Shown: positions 11,909 through 57,100, counted from the whole stretch's first letter. The stretch is 63,514 nt of DNA, filler included, from Octopus bimaculoides (GCF_001194135.2; 7 parts of 7 records of this genome joined end to end with filler, not necessarily neighbours in it); one strand, 5' to 3'. Translations and numbers: made by a program. Notes: generated by a model not told the origin, from the sequence alone.

Positions 11909-12815
11909 TGAGATGGTATCAAAAAGTTCCAGGACTAGTTACGTTTAATAAAAAACAACTTATTTACCTTAAATCTTAACATCATATCCTTCGAAATAGT
12001 CACCTTGCACAGAAATACACCAGTTCCAGCATTCCTGCCATTGTTGGGATCTGGCATGGAAATCGCTTTCCAAAATTGCGACCTTCTGCAATTCACTCTG
12101 GATCTCGACAGCAGTGTTAAGACGGCCACCTTTGAGCTGCATTTTCCTTTTGGGGAAGAGATAGAAGTCCGCATGTGCTAAATCTGGGGAATGCGTCGGG
12201 TGTGGAAATGATACCTTGTTGTTTTTGGTGAGAAACTCACAAACGAGGAGAGCTCACTGATAAAGAAGTACCTTGTCGTTGTGAAGAATCCAATTATTTG
12301 CACTGCACAGATCCCGTTGCTTTCTCCGAATGTCCTCCTTCAAACACTTCAAAACATCACAGGAGAACTTTCAATTGATGGTTTGGCCCTGGGGGATGAA
12401 TTCTCAATACACAATACCACATTTCCAGGGCTGACACTCATGGGAGGTCTTCCAGATTGCTCATCGTCTTCCAGGGACATTCTTCCACTTTTGAAGAACC
12501 CATGCCACTTGAAACATTACATATGACCCATTGCCTCATTGTCATAAGTTTACTGAAGCATGTTCAATGTCTCTGTAGCAGAATTCCCAAGTTTAACTTT
12601 GGCTTTTTGTTCCTGTCCACGACAAAATCACAGACGACAGCATACATGTGATCACAAAAATTATAAATTTCACAACTTGCAAACTAAACACAGTGATATC
12701 ACTCAGCACACTGTCTCATAAGGGTCACTGCTAGCTCTCACTATGCACGCAACCATGTGCTGCCATCTGTTGGCATGCTACAGAACTAGTCTGGGAACTT
12801 TTTGATACCACCTCG
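11909..12815 (-). mobile_element. Internally deleted mariner element with transposase pseudogene
   Basis: ~30-bp TIRs (GAGATGGTATCAAAAAGTTCCAGGACTAGT; right rev-comp CGAGGTGGTATCAAAAAGTTCCCAGACTAGT, TA flank); fragments KLGNSATETLNML...FKSGRMSLEDDEQSGRP and HPTHSPDLAHADFYLFPK...GDYFEG. Confidence 0.92.
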
Positions 12816-13505
12816 TATATACACACATGCAAATACAACATATATATATATATACACACATGCAAATACAACATATATATATATATATATATACACACAT
12901 GCAAATACAACATATATATACATATATATATACACACACATGAGCACTAAGACATGATGTATGCTAACATAAATTTTTGCCTGATCCTTATTTGGTGCAC
13001 CTCACACTTTTTTGATCAAAACTGCATGTTTTAAACTTGATTATTGCTGATGATGGTCAAAATAGCTTTGATACTTTCAAATCACTCACCTACCACCAAC
13101 CACACTTACCACTTCACCTTACTTCATAATGCTTTCTTTTCTTAATTACTAATGATTTATTCCACCTTCTCACACACCTTCTGCCCCCAATCTTAATTTT
13201 TAAAATATTTTTATTCTTTCCATCTTTGTGAGATAAAATCTAATATATATTTTTTATATTTTATTCAAACTAAATATTTTGATTGTTTTAAAATTGTATT
13301 TTACTCCGCCACCACTTGTTTCCAATTTATCTTTCATTTAATTATAATATAATTCTCTGATATTTCTATTTCTGAGTTTTCAAATTAAAATTTTGCTCTC
13401 TTGCATATTATGTTTCCAGTTATAATATTTGTTGCGCTTTTTGGAATTACAATACATACATACATGTTATATATATATATATATGTGTGTATATATATAT
13501 ATATA

Positions 13506-14622: not shown

Positions 14623-15012
14623 CTCTTTAGCATTCAGATTATGTTTGTGATGTGGAATGCTTATTTATTCATTCATGCATTATCCTGTTGCCTCAAGATT
14701 TCAATGATGTAATTATTTTTAGAACGGCATTGTAGCATAAGTGTAAGAGGCCAGATCTGGCCTGTTTGAACATAAAGCAAGTAGGATACTCTTTTACTTG
14801 TTTCAGTCATTTTACTGCACCCATGCTGGAGCGCCGCCTTTAGTTGAGCAAATCGACCCCAGGACTTGTTCTTTGTAAGCCTAGTACTTATTCTATCGAT
14901 CTCTTTTGCTGAACCGCTAAGTTACGGGGACGTAAACACACCAGCATCGGTTGTCAAGTGACGTTGGGGACACACACACAGACACAAACCTATACACACA
15001 CATACATACATA

Positions 15013-15069
<57 letters not shown>

Positions 15070-15261
15070 TATATACGATGGGCTTCTTTTAGTTTCCGTC
15101 TACCAAATCCACTCACAAGGCTTTGGTTGGCCTGAGGCTATAGTAGAAGACACTTGCCCAAGGTGCCACGCAGTGGGACTGAACCCAGAACCATGTGGTT
15201 CGTAAGCAAGCTACTTACCACACAGCTACTCCTGCGCTTGGCTTATTTAAATGCTAAAGGG
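14623..15261 (-). mobile_element. piggyBac-like MITE interrupted by a family A SINE
   Basis: Left piece CTCTTTAGCATTCAGATT...GTAGGATA (14623-14788), right piece ...TTTAAATGCTAAAGGG (15239-15261). Confidence 0.8.
14788..15238 (-). mobile_element. SINE family A, full-length
   Basis: Complete reverse-complement copy from tail CTCTTTTACTTGTTTCAGTC to head ACCACACAGCTACTCCTGCGC. Confidence 0.95.
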
Positions 15262-15900
15262 TAAACATCACTACTGGAATAACCATGAAATTTAATTTTG
15301 TAGTTAAAGGGTTAATTTCAACTTCGAACTTCTAATCCCACCAAATATTACCAAGAAATGACTATCTCCCTTGTATCGTCTGCTAGAGGACTCTATTGGT
15401 GCACTGTCACTCATCCCTCTTGACTTACTGACCACATTAACCACACACACACACACATCCCAGCCTAAATCTAGCCCTTATATTCATTTACCTCACTTTC
15501 TTTCCATGACCACCACTACATTTTGACCACTTGCTCCCCCAAATATCTACTATAAAATAGAATTGGTATTTTCTGCAAGTCCTGTTGTTTCAATAAACTT
15601 GACATATCTCAGTAAAAAAATAATTTCCAACACGACATTTCTCGACAAAAGATAGATTCATATATAAAACTACTTTTTGTGGTTTAGGTTGATGCAATTT
15701 TGAATGGATAAATCTGATTTCCACAGTAAAGGGGTGAAGGAAGAAGGTGCATAGAATTTACGTATCTGTTTTGAAGATTTCTAATCTTAGGTAGCAAATA
15801 CTCGTGCCTGTTTGTAGCCCCTTTTTACCAATTTCTTCAATGGCACAATCCTGTGTTAATGTATCACTCAGTATATAAGCCATCTTAATTGTTATTGAAA

Positions 15901-16116
15901 CCTTTAGCATTGAAACTGGCTGCAACCAGCCCAAATATTTTACCTGTTTTATCTTCAAACTGGCCAAATCTGGCCTTTCATACCTACCCTACAGTGTCAT
16001 TTTAAAAGTATTCAATCACATCATTGAAATCTCAAAGCTATGAGGTAATGCATAATTAATTCAAAACAGGAATTAATAAGCTTTACATTTGACTAAATAA
16101 TCTAATCGTTAAAGGG
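15901..16116 (+). mobile_element. piggyBac-like MITE, near-complete
   Basis: CCTTTAGCATT...GTTAAAGGG termini. Confidence 0.82.
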
Positions 16117-16384
16117 TTTGATCCTGCTCTAATTTTACGTTCCGTGTAATGGTATTTTTTTCTTTTTTGTTTTTGCATTTTCTCTTCAAAGTTACTTCCT
16201 CATTTCTGTGTAATTTTTTTTAAAAAATGGACCACCTTTTTTTTTTTTTTTTTTTTTTGTCAGACAAAGACAAAACCATCTGAATTTTCCTTAAGACTCC
16301 CCTCAATTCAAGTTGTTTTTTTTTTTTTAATGCCCTCATTAAATAAGGATAAGAAACTGTAATATTAATTATTAATGTGTGTCA

Positions 16385-16600
16385 GAAAGTGGTGAGCTGG
16401 CAGAATCGTTAACACACTGGACGAAATGCTTCGTGGTATTTCTCCCGTTGCTACATTCTGAGTTCAAATTCCACCAAGGTCGACTTTGCCTTTCATCCCT
16501 TCGGGGGGTCAATAAAATAAGTACCAGTTGAACACTGGAGTCGATGTAATCTACACATCCCCACCTTCCCCCAAGCTGCCTTTGTGGCAAAAATTTGAAA
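16385..16600 (+). mobile_element. tRNA-derived SINE family I
   Basis: GGTGAGCTGGCAGAATCGTTA...GAGTTCAAATTCC...GTCGACTTTGCCTTTCATCC...ATAAGTACCAG; tail GTGGCAAAAATTTGAAA. Confidence 0.88.
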
Positions 16601-16786
16601 TAATTGTGTGTCTGAAGAAATATTACAGTCAAGGATGAAATATGAAAGTTAGATTTTTTTTGCTCAATCTTAATTTCCACATTGTTTTCGTTGTTTATTA
16701 TTGTTATCATTTATTTGTATCTATTTTATTTGTTTCTTTTCAAATATATTAATGCAGATTATCTATATGTTTGTGTAAGCATATCA

Positions 16787-16837
<51 letters not shown>

Positions 16838-17049
16838 CAGAGTTAGAGGTTGGAATAAGAATATCTGTTCTTACTACTAGTATCATTTACCTATGTTAAC
16901 CCTGGGTCTGGGAATGCAAGCACACTATGCTCATAGGGTACAGGTAATAACTGAATAAACGAAAGTTTATCTGGAATCAAAATAATTAACCGATGTTGGT
17001 CAATTTCTTTGTTGATCAATAGTTTTCTCCATTTTCTGCTTATTTAAAT

Positions 17050-17094
<45 letters not shown>

Positions 17095-17346
17095 ACATAT
17101 ACAAATACCTATATTCACATGTTCATGTACACATGCATACCTGTACATATGCTCAGATGTATATCTGTCCATATATATTTCATGTGCTTACAAGTGATGC
17201 AAGTTACAAGAATTTACAACCCAGGTCAAACAGAACAAACCAGTCTTAATAGTATCTGTACAGATGGAATCTTAATAGTATCTGTAAGTTTTAGTAGTAT
17301 CTGTACAGATGGAGTTAGTATTGTCTAGCTTGTACAGTCATAGAGT

Positions 17347-20212: not shown

Positions 20213-20624
20213 GTGAGCAAATATTGATATTTGTATGAATTGTTTCAGTTTGAAGTGTCATATCCACATGGCTATTTTATCAGCTGTTGTTTTGTTTTAA
20301 CCCTTATTTCTAACCCTTTTTAACCTACTTTTTCATGCATTTTGTCTGCTGGGGACATTGGAATGAGTTGCTTATTTAGTTCTTGCTCAGTTCAACTGAG
20401 ATGTGTTGTTGTTGTTGAATTCTTCAGTCTCTTTGTGGTTTCAAAGTATATAGAGACAGCCAAAGGAATTTATAGAAAGCGAACTTTTTAGTCTAGCTCT
20501 CTCAGACAACCTTTGTTTTCAAAGCATTAAGCATGTCGCTTTGTGTTGATATTTGCCTTTCAATTGGTGTTTTGCTCATGGCTGTTTTGATTTCAATCTG
20601 GTTGCGATATTATCCAACTTAATT

Positions 20625-21530: not shown

Positions 21531-22639
21531 GTGAGTGTGGTTGTATCAGTGTGTGTATGCTGTCTCTGTTGCATATTGATCTGTGTGTGTGTGTGTAAGA
21601 AAAATTATTTTTATAAAGAACAAGATGAAAAGAATTCTTCAGATGGAACCAGCGAAGCATAACTTACAGAGCCTCAGATCATGCCCTGCCCTTCCATCTA
21701 TGACCAAAGCATATAACAAACTTGATAAAAACTTTACTTTAATGTATTTTAGTGTATTTTTTGTTTTGTTTTTATTCATTTTCAGTTATTTTCTTTCTTT
21801 CCTTCTGTATGTTTTTTTTTGTGTGTGTGTGTGTATATAGACATTACACTGTATTATTATGTTGGCTAAAACCTATAGATATAAGAATAATAATAATAAG
21901 AATAATATATGCTAATATTGAACAGTGAGAATGAGAGCTCAATACTGCATTGGTAGATAAATATTCTTTCTACGTCTGCATCTTGGAGACAAGTACCAAT
22001 GTTCACATGTAGCGGGCTTGAAAATTGATAAGAGATTCCTCTTTACATGAAACCATTTGTAGCCTTTAATAACCCACAAATAAAATATATATATATATTT
22101 CAAAAATTTAACAAAAAACACGATAAACGGAAAATTTTCCAAAACATAACAAACAGAAAATTCATGGATAATTCCCCATCAATCAACATCCGAAAGATCA
22201 TTACAATTCACACCTTTAATATATATATATATATATATAAATAAATAACCTTTACAAGAAGAGGTATAACGATGATATTGAAGTTTTGGCCAGTCTGATG
22301 AAAGTGAGCATGCCAAAACTTCGAAGTTACTGTTGACTCCTCTTGAAAAAGAAGAATAGATATGTACCCTATAAAAAGAATTGAGTAATTCTTCAGTTTT
22401 ATGCTTTTATTATAACTCAATATAAAAATGAGCATTTTTATATGTACACACACAAAAATTTTAGATACACGAGTGAGTGTGTGTGTGTGTGTGTGTGTTC
22501 CTATGTTTATGTAGAAAATAGCAAACCTTCACTGGTCACCCCTGCCATTTCCCAAAGGCCCTTGTCTTGTTGATATCCTGTTTTGTTAAAGATATACCAG
22601 TAAATCATCTTGAAAATAACAAGGAACAATTCCTGCAGC

Positions 22640-26590: not shown

Positions 26591-27352
26591 GCACATACAC
26601 AAGGAGGGACTGTAAAATCATTATAGCCAAAAAAACAAAACAAAAAAAAAACACACACAGAGTAACAGAGTGTATGAGAGAGAAAAGAGATAGATTAACA
26701 GAACATGAAATGCAGCGAGAAGAAAATAGCTCTCTGAACAATAAGTATAAGATAAAGATAATAGAGAGATTTTAGTAGCAACAGACGCTATGTAAAGAGA
26801 GTTTCGGCCATCAACGACATTTACGTTTTCTTCTTCTCGTCATCAGTCTATTCGTTATATCAACATTCAGGCAAACGTAAGGAGACACAAAATAGATGCG
26901 ATTAGCATATAGTACAGAGAAGTAATCGATAATTTCTATATTTAAAGATTTCCTTCCAGTATATCCGAGATACTGGCAATGCTACTTAGCGGTCCATAAA
27001 CTGACTAATGAAATATGATAAGAGAACTTGACCGTCTAGTGTATGTATTAGATTGTGTTGTGTGTATCGCAAATGTATGAATGTGTGAATTATAAGAATG
27101 CATGAATGAAAGAATGACTGTTCGTTGGAGTGATTTTAGACGTTGGTTTTAAAATAGTGAGAGATTAGATTGTATAATAATACTCATAAATGTATGTCTG
27201 AGGACTTGCTTAAGTAAATATTGTGGTTGCTAGCTGTTGAGAAATGATGAACGCGCTACTCTGGATAAATGCCTCAGTAAGAGGCTGTCACGTCCGGCCA
27301 CATGGCTGATGTTGCCAGGAAGTTCGTGTCTGTTTATATTATACACAAAAAA

Positions 27353-51338: not shown

Positions 51339-52199
51339 CATTTTCTAGTGACTTGTCAGGACTACCAGACCGACTGGTTTCGGGCTAATTTTGTACATCC
51401 AGAATGGTGGATGCCTGTCCGCTAAAGTTAACAGTAGTTATATAGTTTTTAAAAGGTAAGTGACAACTAGTCACTGATCTTGCAACAAGCAAAGTAGCTC
51501 GTTAGAAAATCTTTATAAGAGATGAAAGTAGTAACTATACTGGAAAGTAATGTTTGTCACCACTTCAACATGGCTGTTCTAAACGAACCGTCGTTACTAC
51601 CATTTTTAACCCCAAGAAGACGCCTCCTCTAGCTGGTTATCGATACAGTCTGCATCCGATATATATTGCAAGTGTGCGTTTGATGAATATGCATATATTG
51701 ATATGCATCTTTATACATATATACTGTGTAAATATAAATGCATATAAATATACATTTGTATATGCATATATACACCTATACATATACATGTACATCTAAT
51801 ATAGGATAAAATTTTCAAAAAATTTTATCAGTGGCCAACAAATCAAAAAATACCTTTTAAGGTGAAAATTACAAACAAATTATAAATAAGGGCAAAGGGA
51901 TTTTTTTTTTTTGCCCTTATTTATAAGCATATATACATATATGTAACAGTTATCATAAGGTGCTGTGCCCAGTGCTATATTCAACCTCGCAAAACACCCT
52001 GTCCGACTGTACTCATTTTATAATGAGTGCGACTTTATTTTCACCATTGAGTATTTTTGTTAGGAAATGATTTTTTTTTTTAGTTAGCTAGGTATAAATT
52101 TATAACATTAAATTAAAATTTGCATTCATACGTCAGTACGTGTATTACGTATATACCTATATATATTTTATACGAATTTATATATCCATATATGAATTG

Positions 52200-52312
52200 C
52201 TAATTTAACCACTTCATACAACTGAAGATATTAATATGAATTCTTCCTGAGATTTCAGATGATCCATTTTGCATGCGGGTTGCTTTTTTCTCTTCCGATA
52301 GTTTACATACAC
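52200..52312 (-). CDS. Candidate terminal exon of the EGF-repeat gene (CVCKLSEEKK...CMKWLN*)
   Basis: CTAAC branch point plus CCATTTCACCAG acceptor; open in phase 1 to TAG; minus-strand AATAAA at 52034-52039. Confidence 0.35.
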
Positions 52313-52678
52313 CTGGTGAAATGGCAGTTAGTGTAGCACATATAATAATGATATGATACATTAGGTATCAAAAAATTGGTTTACTACCGAAACAGTTGTA
52401 GCATAAATTAGACTATCTATTCATCTTCATACACACACACAAACATATATATATATATATATATATANNNNNNNNNNNNNNNNNNNNNNNNNNNNNNNNN
52501 NNNNNNNNNNNNNNNNNNNNNNNNNNNNNNNNNNNNNNNNNNNNNNNNNNNNNNNNNNNNNNNNNNNNNNNNNNNNNNNNNNNNNNNNNNNNNNNNNNNN
52601 NNNNNNNNNNNNNNNNNNNNNNNNNNNNNNNNNNTACGCACATACATTTATAAACAACTTCATCGATATGCACATAAG

Positions 52679-52710
<32 letters not shown>

Positions 52711-52916
52711 GTGACAGATACACACAAACATACACACATCAGAATAAAACATATACCATCTCCAAAGTCTGTCCAAGACATCTTTTATTTACCGAACAAT
52801 TCATCCATTCATTTTATTTGTAATTAACGATTTTGAATATTGGCAAGATGCGCTTGTAATAAGTCTGTGAAAAACATGTATAACAATAAATTGATTATTT
52901 TAAGTGTTGTACTTAC

Positions 52917-53030
52917 AGACGTTACAGTAACGTCCAATATAACCAGGTCGGCATTTACACGAGAATCGATGTCCCCTCCTACGACATACACCACCGTTCT
53001 TACAAGGCCTACGGAGGCATGGATTCATCA
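52917..53030 (-). CDS. EGF-domain exon, copy 2: (L)MNPCLRRPCKNGGVCRRRGHRFSCKCRPGYIGRYCNV
   Basis: TTTTTGTTATACAG acceptor, GTAAGT donor, 114 nt phase 1-1, six cysteines in EGF spacing with the GY.G..C motif. Confidence 0.92.
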
Positions 53031-53486
53031 CTGTATAACAAAAAGCCATATTTTCCAGTTATTTTTATATTTGCAATGGAATTTTGGTGATAAAAAAACA
53101 CATGCTGACACGTAGATATATACACATTTTCACATACTCAACACACACATAATATATATATGTATTTGTGTGTATATACATATGTGTGTGTGTGTGTGTG
53201 TGTATAAATATACATATTCATATGCATAAATATACATGCATATATGTATGTGTGCGTATGTGTGTATAAAGATATATACGCGCGTATGAGTGTATCACAT
53301 ATGTGAGTGTATATACATATAAATGTAGACAGTATATCTATATCTACCAACGGTTATGTGTAATAATGTTTTTGCTTTATTGTATATTTGTTTCTTTTTA
53401 AATCGCCTCTTTGTTATTAATCTTCTATAAGAATGAAGCAGTATCCGTCATTTTGTCATTTCTATCTTCGAAGCCAAGAAGTAAAC

Positions 53487-53657
53487 AAAAGATGGAGACG
53501 GGTGTGTAAACATCAAACAGATGTATTAGTTTAACGCCCGGGAAGTGTGAAAATCTTTTACGTTTCGAGTCTACGCTCTTCGACAGAAAAGAACACAGAA
53601 ATAAACAGGGAGAGAAAATAGAAGAAGGTTTAGTGGCTAACGATCTATCATGGCGAT
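53487..53657 (-). mobile_element. Family F repeat between the duplicated units, hammerhead-like motif at 53555-53591
   Basis: UUUU-CUGUCGA-A-GAGC-GUAG-ACUC-GAAA-CG-U-A-AAAG. Confidence 0.75.
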
Positions 53658-53706
53658 ATTCGGACATACACGTATAAATGTGTCCATAGATTTGTACGTA
53701 GATAAG

Positions 53707-53760
<54 letters not shown>

Positions 53761-54081
53761 CATACATAAATACATACATACATACATACATACACACATA
53801 CATACATACATACATACATACATACATACACACACATACATACATACATACATACATACATACATACATACATAGACAAACTGACAGACACACACATACA
53901 CACATCAGAATAAAACATATACCATCCCCAAAGCCTGTCCAAGACATTTATTATTTACCGAACAATTCATCCATTCATTTTATTTGTAAATAGCGACTTT
54001 GAATATTGGCAAGATGCTTTGTAATAAGTCTGTGATAAATATATATAACAATAAATTGATTAGTTTAAGCGTTGTACTTAC

Positions 54082-54195
54082 AGACGTTACAGTAACGTCC
54101 AATATAACCAGGTCGGCATTTACACGAGAATCGATATCCCCTCCTACGACATACACCACCGTTCTTACAAGGGCTACGGAGGCATGGATTAATCA
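54082..54195 (-). CDS. EGF-domain exon, copy 1: INPCLRSPCKNGGVCRRRGYRFSCKCRPGYIGRYCNV
   Basis: Same splice signals and phase; three nucleotide differences from copy 2. Confidence 0.92.
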
Positions 54196-57100
54196 CTGTA
54201 TAACAAAAAGCCATATTTTCCGGTTATTTTATATTTGCAATGGAATTTTGGTGATAAAAAAGACAGTGCAGCCACATCTACCAACGTTTGTATGTAATAA
54301 TTTTTTTCGCTTTATTGTGTATTTGTTTCTTTTTGCATTTGCCCTCTGTTATTGATCTTCTATAAGAATGAAACAGTATCCGTCATTTTGCCATTTCTAT
54401 CTTCAAACCCCAAGAAGTAAACATGCAATAATAAGTTGTGCGAAACAAAGTCTATTTTAGCGAGATACACCTTATAACATCACCCGAGGAGACACATCTA
54501 CACCGAGAGATACACCTCAACAAGTTGTTCAGTGTCCCACCCGTGAGGAATCGATGCTAGATTGGTCGAAACGATTGTAGTGATCAATAAAGATTCTCGT
54601 ATATTCCATCTCCTGTCTATCTCGAAGGGATAAACACCTCTCTGCGAATGATCTAATAATGTAGTATCGCCTGAAGAAATGAATCCATAATGATGATCAA
54701 CCGGATGAACACGGATAATATGGACTGTACTGTACTAATCCCAAGGATACCGACTCTGATGTCAAAATCATGTAATTTGTGGAAAAGTACGTAGCGATGT
54801 ATTAAATATTTTTTTAATTCCATCCCAGAATTATTATTCTTATATTTATCCGACATTATATCGGTATAACCATGACGCAACCTCGAAACACTGACTTACT
54901 AGTCTGAGTCGTTAGACAGTAGCCGGTATAATGAAATAGGAGTTTTTTTTTTTGCATACCCCTNNNNNNNNNNNNNNNNNNNNNNNNNNNNNNNNNNNNN
55001 NNNNNNNTTAATTAATTAANNNNNNNNNNNNNNNNNNNNNNNNNNNNNNNNNNNNNNNNNNNNCCAGAATTTGGTAGGATAAAAACCAAAAACAAAATCA
55101 AGAGATTTGGTGGGGAGTACATATATTTTTTTCTGGTACTTAATTTTCAACAAAATGGATAAGGTTAACATGGAATTCTCACAGAAGGACATCCCCTTAC
55201 ACAGCAAAGAAATGTACTCTTGTTTTTTGCAAACATCCTCAAAATGACTTTCTAAAAAAGTTGATTGCAGACTACGAACCTGTTTCAAATAGCGTTGGCT
55301 ACACAGTCATTAGATTGTGGCCATGCTGGGGTACCACCTTGAAAATTTTTAGTTGAACGTATCGACCCCAGAATTTGTTTCCTTTTTACTTGTTGCCGTA
55401 ATTAGACTGCGACCATGCTGGGGCACCACCTTGAAGAATTTTTAGACGACTGTAAGGGACCTGGAATCTTTTTAAAGTCAAGTCAAAACAACGTCTGTGA
55501 TNNNNNNNNNNNNNNNNNNNNNNNNNNNNNNNNNNNNNNNNNNNNNNNNNNNNNNNNNNNNNNNNNNNNNNNNNNNNNNNNNNNNNNNNNNNNNNNNNNN
55601 NNNNNNNNNNNNNNNNNNNNNNNNNNNNNNNNNNNNNNNNNNNNNNNNNNNNNNNNNNNNNNNNNNNNNNNNNNNNNNNNNNNNNNNNNNNNNNNNNNNN
55701 NNNNNNNNNNNNNNNNNNNNNNNNNNNNNNNNNNNNNNNNNNNNNNNNNNNNNNNNNNNNNNNNNNNNNNNNNNNNNNNNNNNNNNNNNNNNNNNNNNNN
55801 NNNNNNNNNNNNNNNNNNNNNNNNNNNNNNNNNNNNNNNNNNNNNNNNNNNNNNNNNNNNNNNNNNNNNNNNNNNNNNNNNNNNNNNNNNNNNNNNNNNN
55901 NNNNNNNNNNNNNNNNNNNNNNNNNNNNNNNNNNNNNNNNNNNNNNNNNNNNNNNNNNNNNNNNNNNNNNNNNNNNNNNNNNNNNNNNNNNNNNNNNNNN
56001 NNNNNNNNNNNNNNNNNNNNNNNNNNNNNNNNNNNNNNNNNNNNNNNNNNNNNNNNNNNNNNNNNNNNNNNNNNNNNNNNNNNNNNNNNNNNNNNNNNNN
56101 NNNNNNNNNAAAAACTAACTTGATTATCTCGATTTATACTGTTTTATTTTCTTCCAGTGATGCCGTTGAAAAATTATATATAAAAAAAGAAATCTATAAG
56201 ATCCTACATCTTTACATTAACCTATTCATTTTGGTCATTCAGGGTGGTCAGGTGATTTTTTTTGCTATTCCCCATTATTGTTGGTTTCATTTTCATTGAT
56301 ATTTTACCTAATATGGCTGTAAAATAAAAGACCGCCTTAAGTTTTTGAAAATAATTTATGAATTTGTTTTCTATTAATATGTTTCGATTTAAAAAAAAAA
56401 ATATTTTTAAATGTTTGTCTTTAATCTTTTGATGTACTACAGTTTGTTATTACTTTTATTTTTGTATTGTTTTTTTTAAAGGAAGTCATTTTATCTGATG
56501 TTGCTTACCATATCATTTCCACTTTTGCAAAAATTTCACAGATGACAGTGGTTTAGAACCTATTACTGTTGCTGGTGCTGTCCTGTGACTTTTCCTTCTA
56601 GTTTTGCTAATTGTTCTTTCAGATTGTCTATATCCACCAATTTTTAAGTATCTCTGCCAAATATTAGTTATTTTAGCAGCTGTCTACTACCATAAGTACC
56701 TGACCATAAATAGGTGGATGTATAAAAAAATGTTTAAAAGTTGAAACAAACAAATAAATAAGCTCAAGGATCATAACTAATAACAATACATCTTAATTGC
56801 AATCCAAAATACCCTCTTCTTTCACAAAATGATTAGGGCCATTGCATCTGCAGGCGTAACTATAGTAAAAGTAAAGTTGTATGCTCAAAAATTGCTATCA
56901 GATAGTTTAAAGTTTAGAGAGATCAATGAAATACAAAATTTCTTCTCAAATTATGTCTTTTGAAGTGATTCTGGCACCTTTTCATTCCAATTCAAGTGAA
57001 ATATAATTTTGAAGAAAAGAAATTTTATGGAAACCAAATCCTTAATCTGTAATCCTTGATTTGCTATTTCACTCAAACTCTCAATTAAACTTTGATTAAC

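Follow-up and report, generated by a model that had tools for sequence, protein, structure and literature searches.

Do two nearly identical, strongly basic EGF exons on the minus strand of an Octopus bimaculoides sequence form a small gene of their own that annotation has missed, or do they belong to a larger gene, and what might such a protein do? The exons lie in a window of 63,514 nucleotides (nt; the whole stretch of DNA that was analysed, filler included), within a single piece at 50911-54963, minus strand. An earlier note on this DNA had read them as the core of an unannotated gene with a short first exon and a terminal exon nearby. We find that this is not a new small gene and that the locus is already known by annotation. 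The two units are very probably EGF3 and EGF4, successive internal cassette exons in an annotated O. bimaculoides gene on chromosome CM046603.1, with the structure and the duplication history set out below.

The EGF exons belong to an annotated gene

The peptide spliced from the two exons is found at 100% identity, and contiguously, at residues 104-179 of the RefSeq protein XP_014776970.1 (927 amino acids; database label P0011), and XP_052822702.1 (1545 amino acids; P0154) holds the same spliced stretch, again exact and contiguous. The latter is the current RefSeq product and the former an earlier one of the same gene. Both are automatically named 'neurogenic locus notch homolog', Octopus bimaculoides ('protein 1 / 2-like' for XP_052822702.1 / XP_014776970.1, respectively). 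At the DNA level, the piece, including its 167-N gap, is 100% identical to positions 11160-15212 of L001, the genomic locus of XP_052822702.1 (GCA_001194135.2 CM046603.1:46175635-46266211). The exact peptide match, together with the identity of piece and locus, therefore places the exons in an annotated gene, and the proposal that the gene was unannotated falls, as both products contain them. Nor is it a small, stand-alone tandem-EGF gene, since Pfam finds 21 EGF, two VWA and one VWD domain in the current model.

An exhaustive HMMER search with the 37-residue exon translation as the query returned thousands of EGF proteins, among which XP_014776970.1 stood out with 64% identity across ten stretches. 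A word-indexed protein search with the 75-residue spliced query gave three weak matches only and missed both proteins that contain the peptide at 100%. Negative results from such a search are untrustworthy for short cysteine-rich queries, and our early impression that the spliced peptide lacks relatives was dropped because it had come from this search. An exact look-up of the two 49-residue genomic open reading frames found no record, because these frames consist of exon plus intron read-through, and an Rfam scan of the piece found no RNA family.

The description of the exons themselves in the earlier note, as two symmetric phase-1 EGF exons with canonical borders, holds at the positions given in Table 1. 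Both are preceded by the acceptor TTATACAG/TG (in longer context TATGGCTTTTTGTTATACAG/TG) and followed by the donor TCT/GTAAGT (in longer context ...GTCT/GTAAGTACAAC), the slash marking the exon border. Joining 54082 to 53030 creates the codon T/TG, Leu, and the two RefSeq proteins carry exactly this junction, as predicted from in-frame splicing to tandem EGF domains. The EGF frame is the sole open frame across each exon, the other two being interrupted by stops. Both exons encode the cysteine spacing C-x4-C-x5-C-x8-C-x-C-x8-C, and Pfam PF00008 is matched with E 3e-7 (31 bits) by one domain and E 4.7e-12 (46.4 bits) by the two together, against a cut-off of 21.5. EGF_CA (PF07645) gave no match in EGF3 or EGF4 at E <= 1, and the domains start with (L)I/M-N-P-C and hold no acidic residues, in agreement with the earlier reading that the calcium-binding EGF consensus is missing.

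The unusual composition reported for the pair was also confirmed: each domain contains 7-8 Arg, 2 Lys and no Asp or Glu, with Tyr at about 5%, which gives net charges of +9 and +10 and an isoelectric point (pI) of 10.0-10.5. These charges are extreme among EGF domains. For 2887 EGF domains taken from other top HMMER hits the mean net charge was -1.1 (standard deviation 2.1), with 0.3% at or above +7 and 0.035% at or above +9.

Architecture of the gene and its product

Exact matching of XP_052822702.1 to L001 yielded a full exon map of 21 EGF exons and two VWA exons with AG/GT borders over a gene span of about 80 kb, and nearly every EGF domain is encoded by its own 111-114-nt, phase 1-1 exon (Table 1). 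The order of domains in the protein is signal peptide, five Arg/Lys-rich EGFs, VWA, one EGF, eleven cationic EGFs, VWA, four near-neutral EGFs, VWD and a Cys-rich tail. The N-terminus, MKTLCFLTLIVIAVVLTRTSG, encoded 6 kb upstream of the piece, reads directly from the sequence as a putative signal peptide, consistent with the secreted product that had been proposed. The mature protein has a net charge of +184 and a pI of about 9.7, and it is in the two cationic EGF blocks that this charge is concentrated, with about +21 per 100 residues. Over the whole protein EGF_CA scores no higher than 17 bits, its cut-off being 27, and does so in a neutral EGF. The two VWA domains (PF00092) score 317 bits together, and the metal ion-dependent adhesion site (MIDAS) motif DxSxS...T...D, as read from the sequence, is intact in both (D-E-S-G-S, GATNT/GMTNT, ITDGRS). 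The VWD domain (PF00094) scores 76 bits against a cut-off of 22.9 and is followed by a Cys-rich stretch, with no C8 or TIL domain found in XP_052822702.1 by Pfam at E <= 0.1; a paralogue, P0186, carries PF08742 and PF01826.

The same chromosome also harbours paralogous EGF/VWA/VWD genes, named matrilin-2-like, zonadhesin-like and zonadhesin, and the accessions in this neighbourhood (XP_052822698, XP_052822699, XP_052822702 and XP_014774721.2) are near-consecutive. The near-consecutive accessions suggest a local gene cluster.

Table 1. Features of the EGF3/EGF4 piece and of the gene that contains it. Window positions are on the minus strand except for the gap; L001 positions refer to the genomic locus of XP_052822702.1.
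Feature	Window	L001	Remarks
EGF3 exon, (L)INPCLRSPCKNGGVCRRRGYRFSCKCRPGYIGRYCNV	54082..54195	11928-12041	114 nt, phase 1-1; residues 104-141 of both RefSeq proteins; 100% match
EGF4 exon, (L)MNPCLRRPCKNGGVCRRRGHRFSCKCRPGYIGRYCNV	52917..53030	13093-13206	114 nt, phase 1-1; residues 142-179 of both RefSeq proteins; 100% match
Duplication unit with EGF3	53700..54423		upstream intron flank, exon, downstream flank, terminal (TATG)n/(TATC)n
Intron spacer between units	53491..53699		part 53626-53479 orthologous to O. sinensis L004 24240-24389
Duplication unit with EGF4	52635..53490		ends at the assembly gap, within its microsatellite or immediately past it
Assembly gap, 167 N	52468..52634		intron downstream of EGF4; unchanged in GCA_001194135.2
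Intronic segment A	51339..52261		88-95% identical to O. sinensis L004 22538-24014; candidate last exon overlaps its start
49-nt internal EGF exon fragment (KNGGVCRRRGHRFSC core)	51290..51338	14785-14833	98-100% identical to EGF4; intronic, without splice sites
Signal-peptide exons (two)		5001, 6798	
EGF1		7885	
EGF2		9723-9836	upstream neighbour of EGF3, outside the piece
EGF5		20245-20355	downstream neighbour of EGF4, outside the piece
First VWA		21823-22386	single exon
EGF6		24857	
Cationic EGF exons (eleven)		25075-47559	
Second VWA		49013	single exon
Near-neutral EGF exons (four), followed by VWD and Cys-rich tail		from 52947	

Growth of the EGF array by exon duplication

The EGF3 and EGF4 exons lie within a tandem DNA duplication of about 0.93-1.17 kb, which takes in their intron flanks and has a (TATC/TATG)n microsatellite at its end. 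In the EGF2/EGF3 pair the homology reaches about 60 nt further upstream, to about 54483, and in the EGF4 unit a low-complexity insertion of 229 nt, rich in AT/AC, lies upstream of the exon (about 53327-53099). Over exon and flanks, the EGF2, EGF3 and EGF4 units are 88-94% identical. The first EGF block has two EGFs in O. sinensis versus five in O. bimaculoides: the O. sinensis 5' module, on the gapless contig L004 (unplaced, 47 kb), has EGF1 and an equivalent of EGF5 only, and a decayed, internally deleted EGF-like remnant lies between them at 26903-27046. This difference indicates that EGF2-4 arose when a unit of about 1.1 kb was triplicated in tandem, and that the triplication is specific to the O. 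bimaculoides lineage. The divergence of the triplicated flanks (7-12%) is similar to that of orthologous introns between O. bimaculoides and O. sinensis (5-12%). At the loci of O. sinensis and O. vulgaris we found at least 14-15 cationic EGF exons with a spacing of 0.8-1.5 kb, the array running beyond the fetched flank. The idea of expansion by exon duplication is thus upheld by the triplication and by a copy number that differs among Octopus species, and EGF repeat number may change quickly through unequal crossing-over.

An origin of the units from a high-copy dispersed repeat or transposon was considered and rejected, as the matches to the unit within the 90-kb locus are confined to EGF exons of this gene and to a few decayed copies. 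Decayed EGF-exon-like sequences with 68-78% identity to the unit, outside the RefSeq model, are present at L001 26136-26234, 43278-43391 and 89036-89184.

When the gene's 16 cationic EGF exons are compared, the median ratio of nonsynonymous to synonymous substitution rates (dN/dS) is 0.30 and the pooled pN/pS is 0.41. Invariant among them are the six cysteines, a Gly/Pro/Tyr/Phe scaffold and several basic positions (K9, K24, R26, R/K17). Both the ratios and the invariant positions therefore point to purifying selection on the cationic EGF type as a whole.

Could EGF2-EGF4 instead be recently duplicated pseudo-exons, intact-looking but absent from or rare in mature mRNA, which entered the annotation by ab initio or homology extension? 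It is gene models that place them in the mRNA, O. sinensis has none of the three and only the decayed remnant in their place, and partial exon debris lies nearby, at 51338-51290 and in the several decayed copies of L001. Moreover, the EGF3 and EGF4 exons differ at 3 of 114 nt and all three changes are nonsynonymous (I/M, S/R, Y/H). However, all three copies retain a perfect acceptor, a GTAAGT donor, the sole open EGF frame and six cysteines, and the exons appear in two independent RefSeq annotation rounds. Between the EGF3 and EGF4 units, the exons have diverged less than the flanks (2.6% versus 9.8%, Fisher p = 0.012; 6.8% and p = 0.14 when near flanks only are compared). The O. sinensis isoforms X1-X3, in addition, differ by multiples of 37 amino acids, that is, by whole EGF exons, which suggests that EGF exons are used as cassettes. 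On balance, we consider it improbable that EGF2-EGF4 are pseudo-exons.

Several points nevertheless weigh against our assignment of EGF3 and EGF4 as working exons of this gene and against the picture of the gene as a whole. The RefSeq models are computational (Gnomon) predictions, and the protein searches turned up no transcript-derived fragment of this protein; a search of transcript-derived (Logan) fragments with residues 1-247 found none, and revealed the 5' module of the O. sinensis gene (P0269). The three changes between EGF3 and EGF4, too few for a dN/dS test of the pair, are all nonsynonymous, so that the recent pair alone shows no purifying selection. Because 20% of the locus is N (18.3 kb of 90.6 kb, with runs of 1068 and 2079 N flanking the piece in L001, at 10092-11159 and 15213-17291, respectively) and rearrangement debris is present, neither the number of copies nor the order of the exons in O. 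bimaculoides is certain. Finally, the accessions and names of the orthologues are absent from the supplements to two papers on the skin-mucus proteome of O. vulgaris.

Gene ends and the assembly gap

The small gene that had been proposed would start with a 58-nt first exon at 54957-54900 (L001 11166-11223; MQKKK...), continue through the two EGF exons, and end, via a junction from 52917 to 52312, in a terminal exon at 52312-52200. Both end exons are phase-compatible and have plausible splice signals, GTAAGT after the first and CTAAC...TTTCACCAG before the last. Neither of them, however, is in either RefSeq model, where both stretches are intronic and the coding neighbours of the pair are EGF2 and EGF5, and the real N-terminus is the good putative signal peptide 6 kb upstream of the piece. 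The peptide of the candidate first exon, MQKKKLLFHYTGYCLTTQT, is not a signal peptide, and the exon sits at a contig edge directly after the 1068-N gap. The candidate last exon (L001 13811-13923) falls in the intron between EGF4 and EGF5. Its acceptor and 5' half are absent from the orthologous O. sinensis intron, only the 3' half aligning, and the 90-95% identity to O. sinensis in this region runs on unchanged for about 900 nt beyond the stop codon; the conservation is therefore intronic rather than coding. Pfam finds nothing in the tail. With these observations, a stand-alone gene with the proposed ends is most improbable. A coding exon hidden beyond the gap was likewise ruled out, since tblastn of the full protein against the piece recovered the two EGF exons and the 49-nt exon fragment only.

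The 167-N gap itself is crossed by no exon or reading frame, the donor of EGF4 lying 282 nt before it. It begins right after the microsatellite of the second unit, and the end of a microsatellite is a typical site of assembly breaks; its two flanks share low-complexity similarity only. On the gapless O. sinensis contig the order is EGF1, segment A, spacer B (the orthologue of 53626-53479), EGF remnant and EGF5 equivalent. In the O. bimaculoides scaffold, segment A comes after spacer B and after EGF4, opposite to the O. sinensis order, in which the two sides of the gap are not neighbours. The continuity of the scaffold is therefore doubtful, the sequence beyond the gap being either misplaced by scaffolding or rearranged, and the 1.56-kb contig that follows the gap (52467-50911) may be misplaced. 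The 49-nt fragment is joined to the intron segment through a GTA microhomology, exactly where the O. sinensis orthologue turns unrelated, and after it comes a tail of very high AT content (16% GC). It marks either a rearrangement breakpoint or a chimeric contig join. The gaps may also conceal additional EGF units.

Orthologues and their annotation

Orthologues with the same cationic-EGF/VWA/EGF/VWD architecture are O. sinensis LOC115209189 together with a 'matrilin-2' (P0269), O. vulgaris CAI9719088.1 and Argonauta hians Ahia01_000930800. For O. sinensis and O. vulgaris we used the loci on CM016861.1 (L002) and OX597816.1 (L003), respectively, in addition to L004. In XP_036356792-94 (O. sinensis) and CAI9719088.1, the N-terminal cationic EGF exons are translated in the wrong frame, which gives MHLIHAIADLARTVAYVLEEDGASAVNADLDIADDTV repeats where the correct frame gives VNPCHSRPCKNGGVCIGRGRSFSCKCRPGYSGRHCHA. 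Both the O. vulgaris and the O. sinensis models lack the true 5' module, which for the O. sinensis gene is the separate 'matrilin-2' model on L004. The orthologue models of both species thus need correction, since their translation is partly out of frame and their 5' module has been split off.

Relation to known protein families

That the gene encodes a Notch receptor homologue acting in cell-cell signalling, as the RefSeq name says and as the PDB sequences that match the EGF pair best (Delta-like 1 and Notch1 EGF repeats) might be taken to support, can be dismissed as next to impossible, given that VWA and VWD domains stand in place of LNR, NOD/NODP, ankyrin and a transmembrane region after the EGFs, and that the EGFs do not have the calcium-binding consensus typical of Notch ligand-binding repeats. 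Pfam scans of XP_014776970.1 and XP_052822702.1 found no LNR (PF00066), NOD/NODP (PF06816, PF07684) or ankyrin (PF12796) domain, whereas true Notch matches in the same search table do carry LNR/NOD/ankyrin domains. The name 'Notch' is therefore an error of automatic naming, and a misleading one for a secreted EGF/VWA/VWD protein.

The closest functional analogy appears to be with the basic tandem-EGF proteins of mussels. Mfp-2 is a mussel foot protein made of EGF repeats (Inoue et al., 1995, as cited in PMC9314366) and is described as a cohesive plaque component (PMC6244088), while Pvfp-5beta (PDB 7QAB) consists of two EGF modules with one positively charged face (PMC9314366). Tandem disulfide-stabilised EGF modules that are basic and secreted, with one positively charged face, are what the octopus protein would share with them. 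The mussel proteins are EGF-only, in contrast to the octopus protein, in which the EGF blocks are interrupted by two VWA domains and followed by a VWD. In composition the agreement is partial: both are basic, but the mussel proteins are rich in Lys and in Tyr (3,4-dihydroxyphenylalanine, DOPA), whereas the octopus EGFs owe their charge mainly to Arg, with 2 Lys per domain in the pair and about 5% Tyr. The EGF pair matches PVFP-5 (PDB 7QAB) at E 1.2e-10, but Notch and Delta EGFs match far better. The resemblance to mussel foot protein 2 pointed out in the earlier note is therefore generic to EGF domains.

Matrilins, like the octopus protein, combine VWA and EGF domains, but they end in a coiled coil, whereas the octopus protein has no Matrilin_ccoil match in Pfam and ends in a VWD and Cys-rich region. 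The latter combination is shared with VWF, zonadhesin and gel-forming mucins. In proteins of that type the VWD is followed by C8 and TIL, which paralogues of the octopus protein have; behind its own VWD lies the Cys-rich stretch, and Pfam detected neither domain at E <= 0.1. The array of 16 polycationic EGFs has no place among the features of the matrilin or of the VWF/zonadhesin/mucin families.

Only one other EGF array in the top 150 HMMER hits was strongly cationic, that of XP_046863735.1 from the soft coral Xenia sp. ('neurogenic locus Notch protein-like isoform X8'; P0098), with seven nearly identical tandem EGFs that are not calcium-binding and have a mean net charge of +7.7. The Xenia EGFs are Lys-rich, as opposed to Arg-rich, they are flanked by Trp/Cys-rich domains, and the lineage is unrelated, so the likeness is presumably convergent.

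Possible function and significance

From its architecture, we infer that the protein is a secreted, multimerising, polycationic glycoprotein of an extracellular matrix, mucus or adhesive type. The roles of VWD domains in multimerisation and of VWA domains in binding are established for VWF, mucins, zonadhesin and matrilins. By analogy, the VWD and Cys-rich C-terminus would join molecules into disulfide-linked multimers, and the VWA domains would bind their ligands via a metal ion. The basic EGF rods, rigid and disulfide-bonded, would attach to polyanions or surfaces. A literature search with the RefSeq accessions yielded no mention, and papers on octopus skin mucus, ink, the oviducal gland, suckers and the argonaut eggcase do not mention the protein. 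The skin mucus of O. vulgaris is enriched in VWD and VWA proteins (PMC10138644).

A more specific proposal, which we put forward as a speculation with rather long odds, is that the Arg-rich EGF array is an Octopus-specific polycationic module that acts like the mussel EGF adhesive or cohesive proteins, or as a cationic antimicrobial mucus scaffold, by binding polyanionic surfaces or glycans. Unequal crossing-over between exon units of 1 kb would make its repeat number evolve fast between species, with 5+11 EGFs in O. bimaculoides versus 2 and at least 15 in O. sinensis. If true, basic EGF rods would have been put to use for adhesion or cohesion in a cephalopod independently, by convergence.

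The finding is, in sum, one of two exons of an annotated RefSeq gene, the gene ends proposed earlier being wrong. What remains of interest is an uncharacterised, extremely basic EGF array, along with the mistakes in the gene models of related species. The locus illustrates clearly how a domain array grows by tandem duplication of phase 1-1 exons, with copy number varying between close Octopus species, and if the protein is a component of an adhesive, of mucus or of egg attachment, its Arg-rich EGF module would be of interest to the bioadhesion field.

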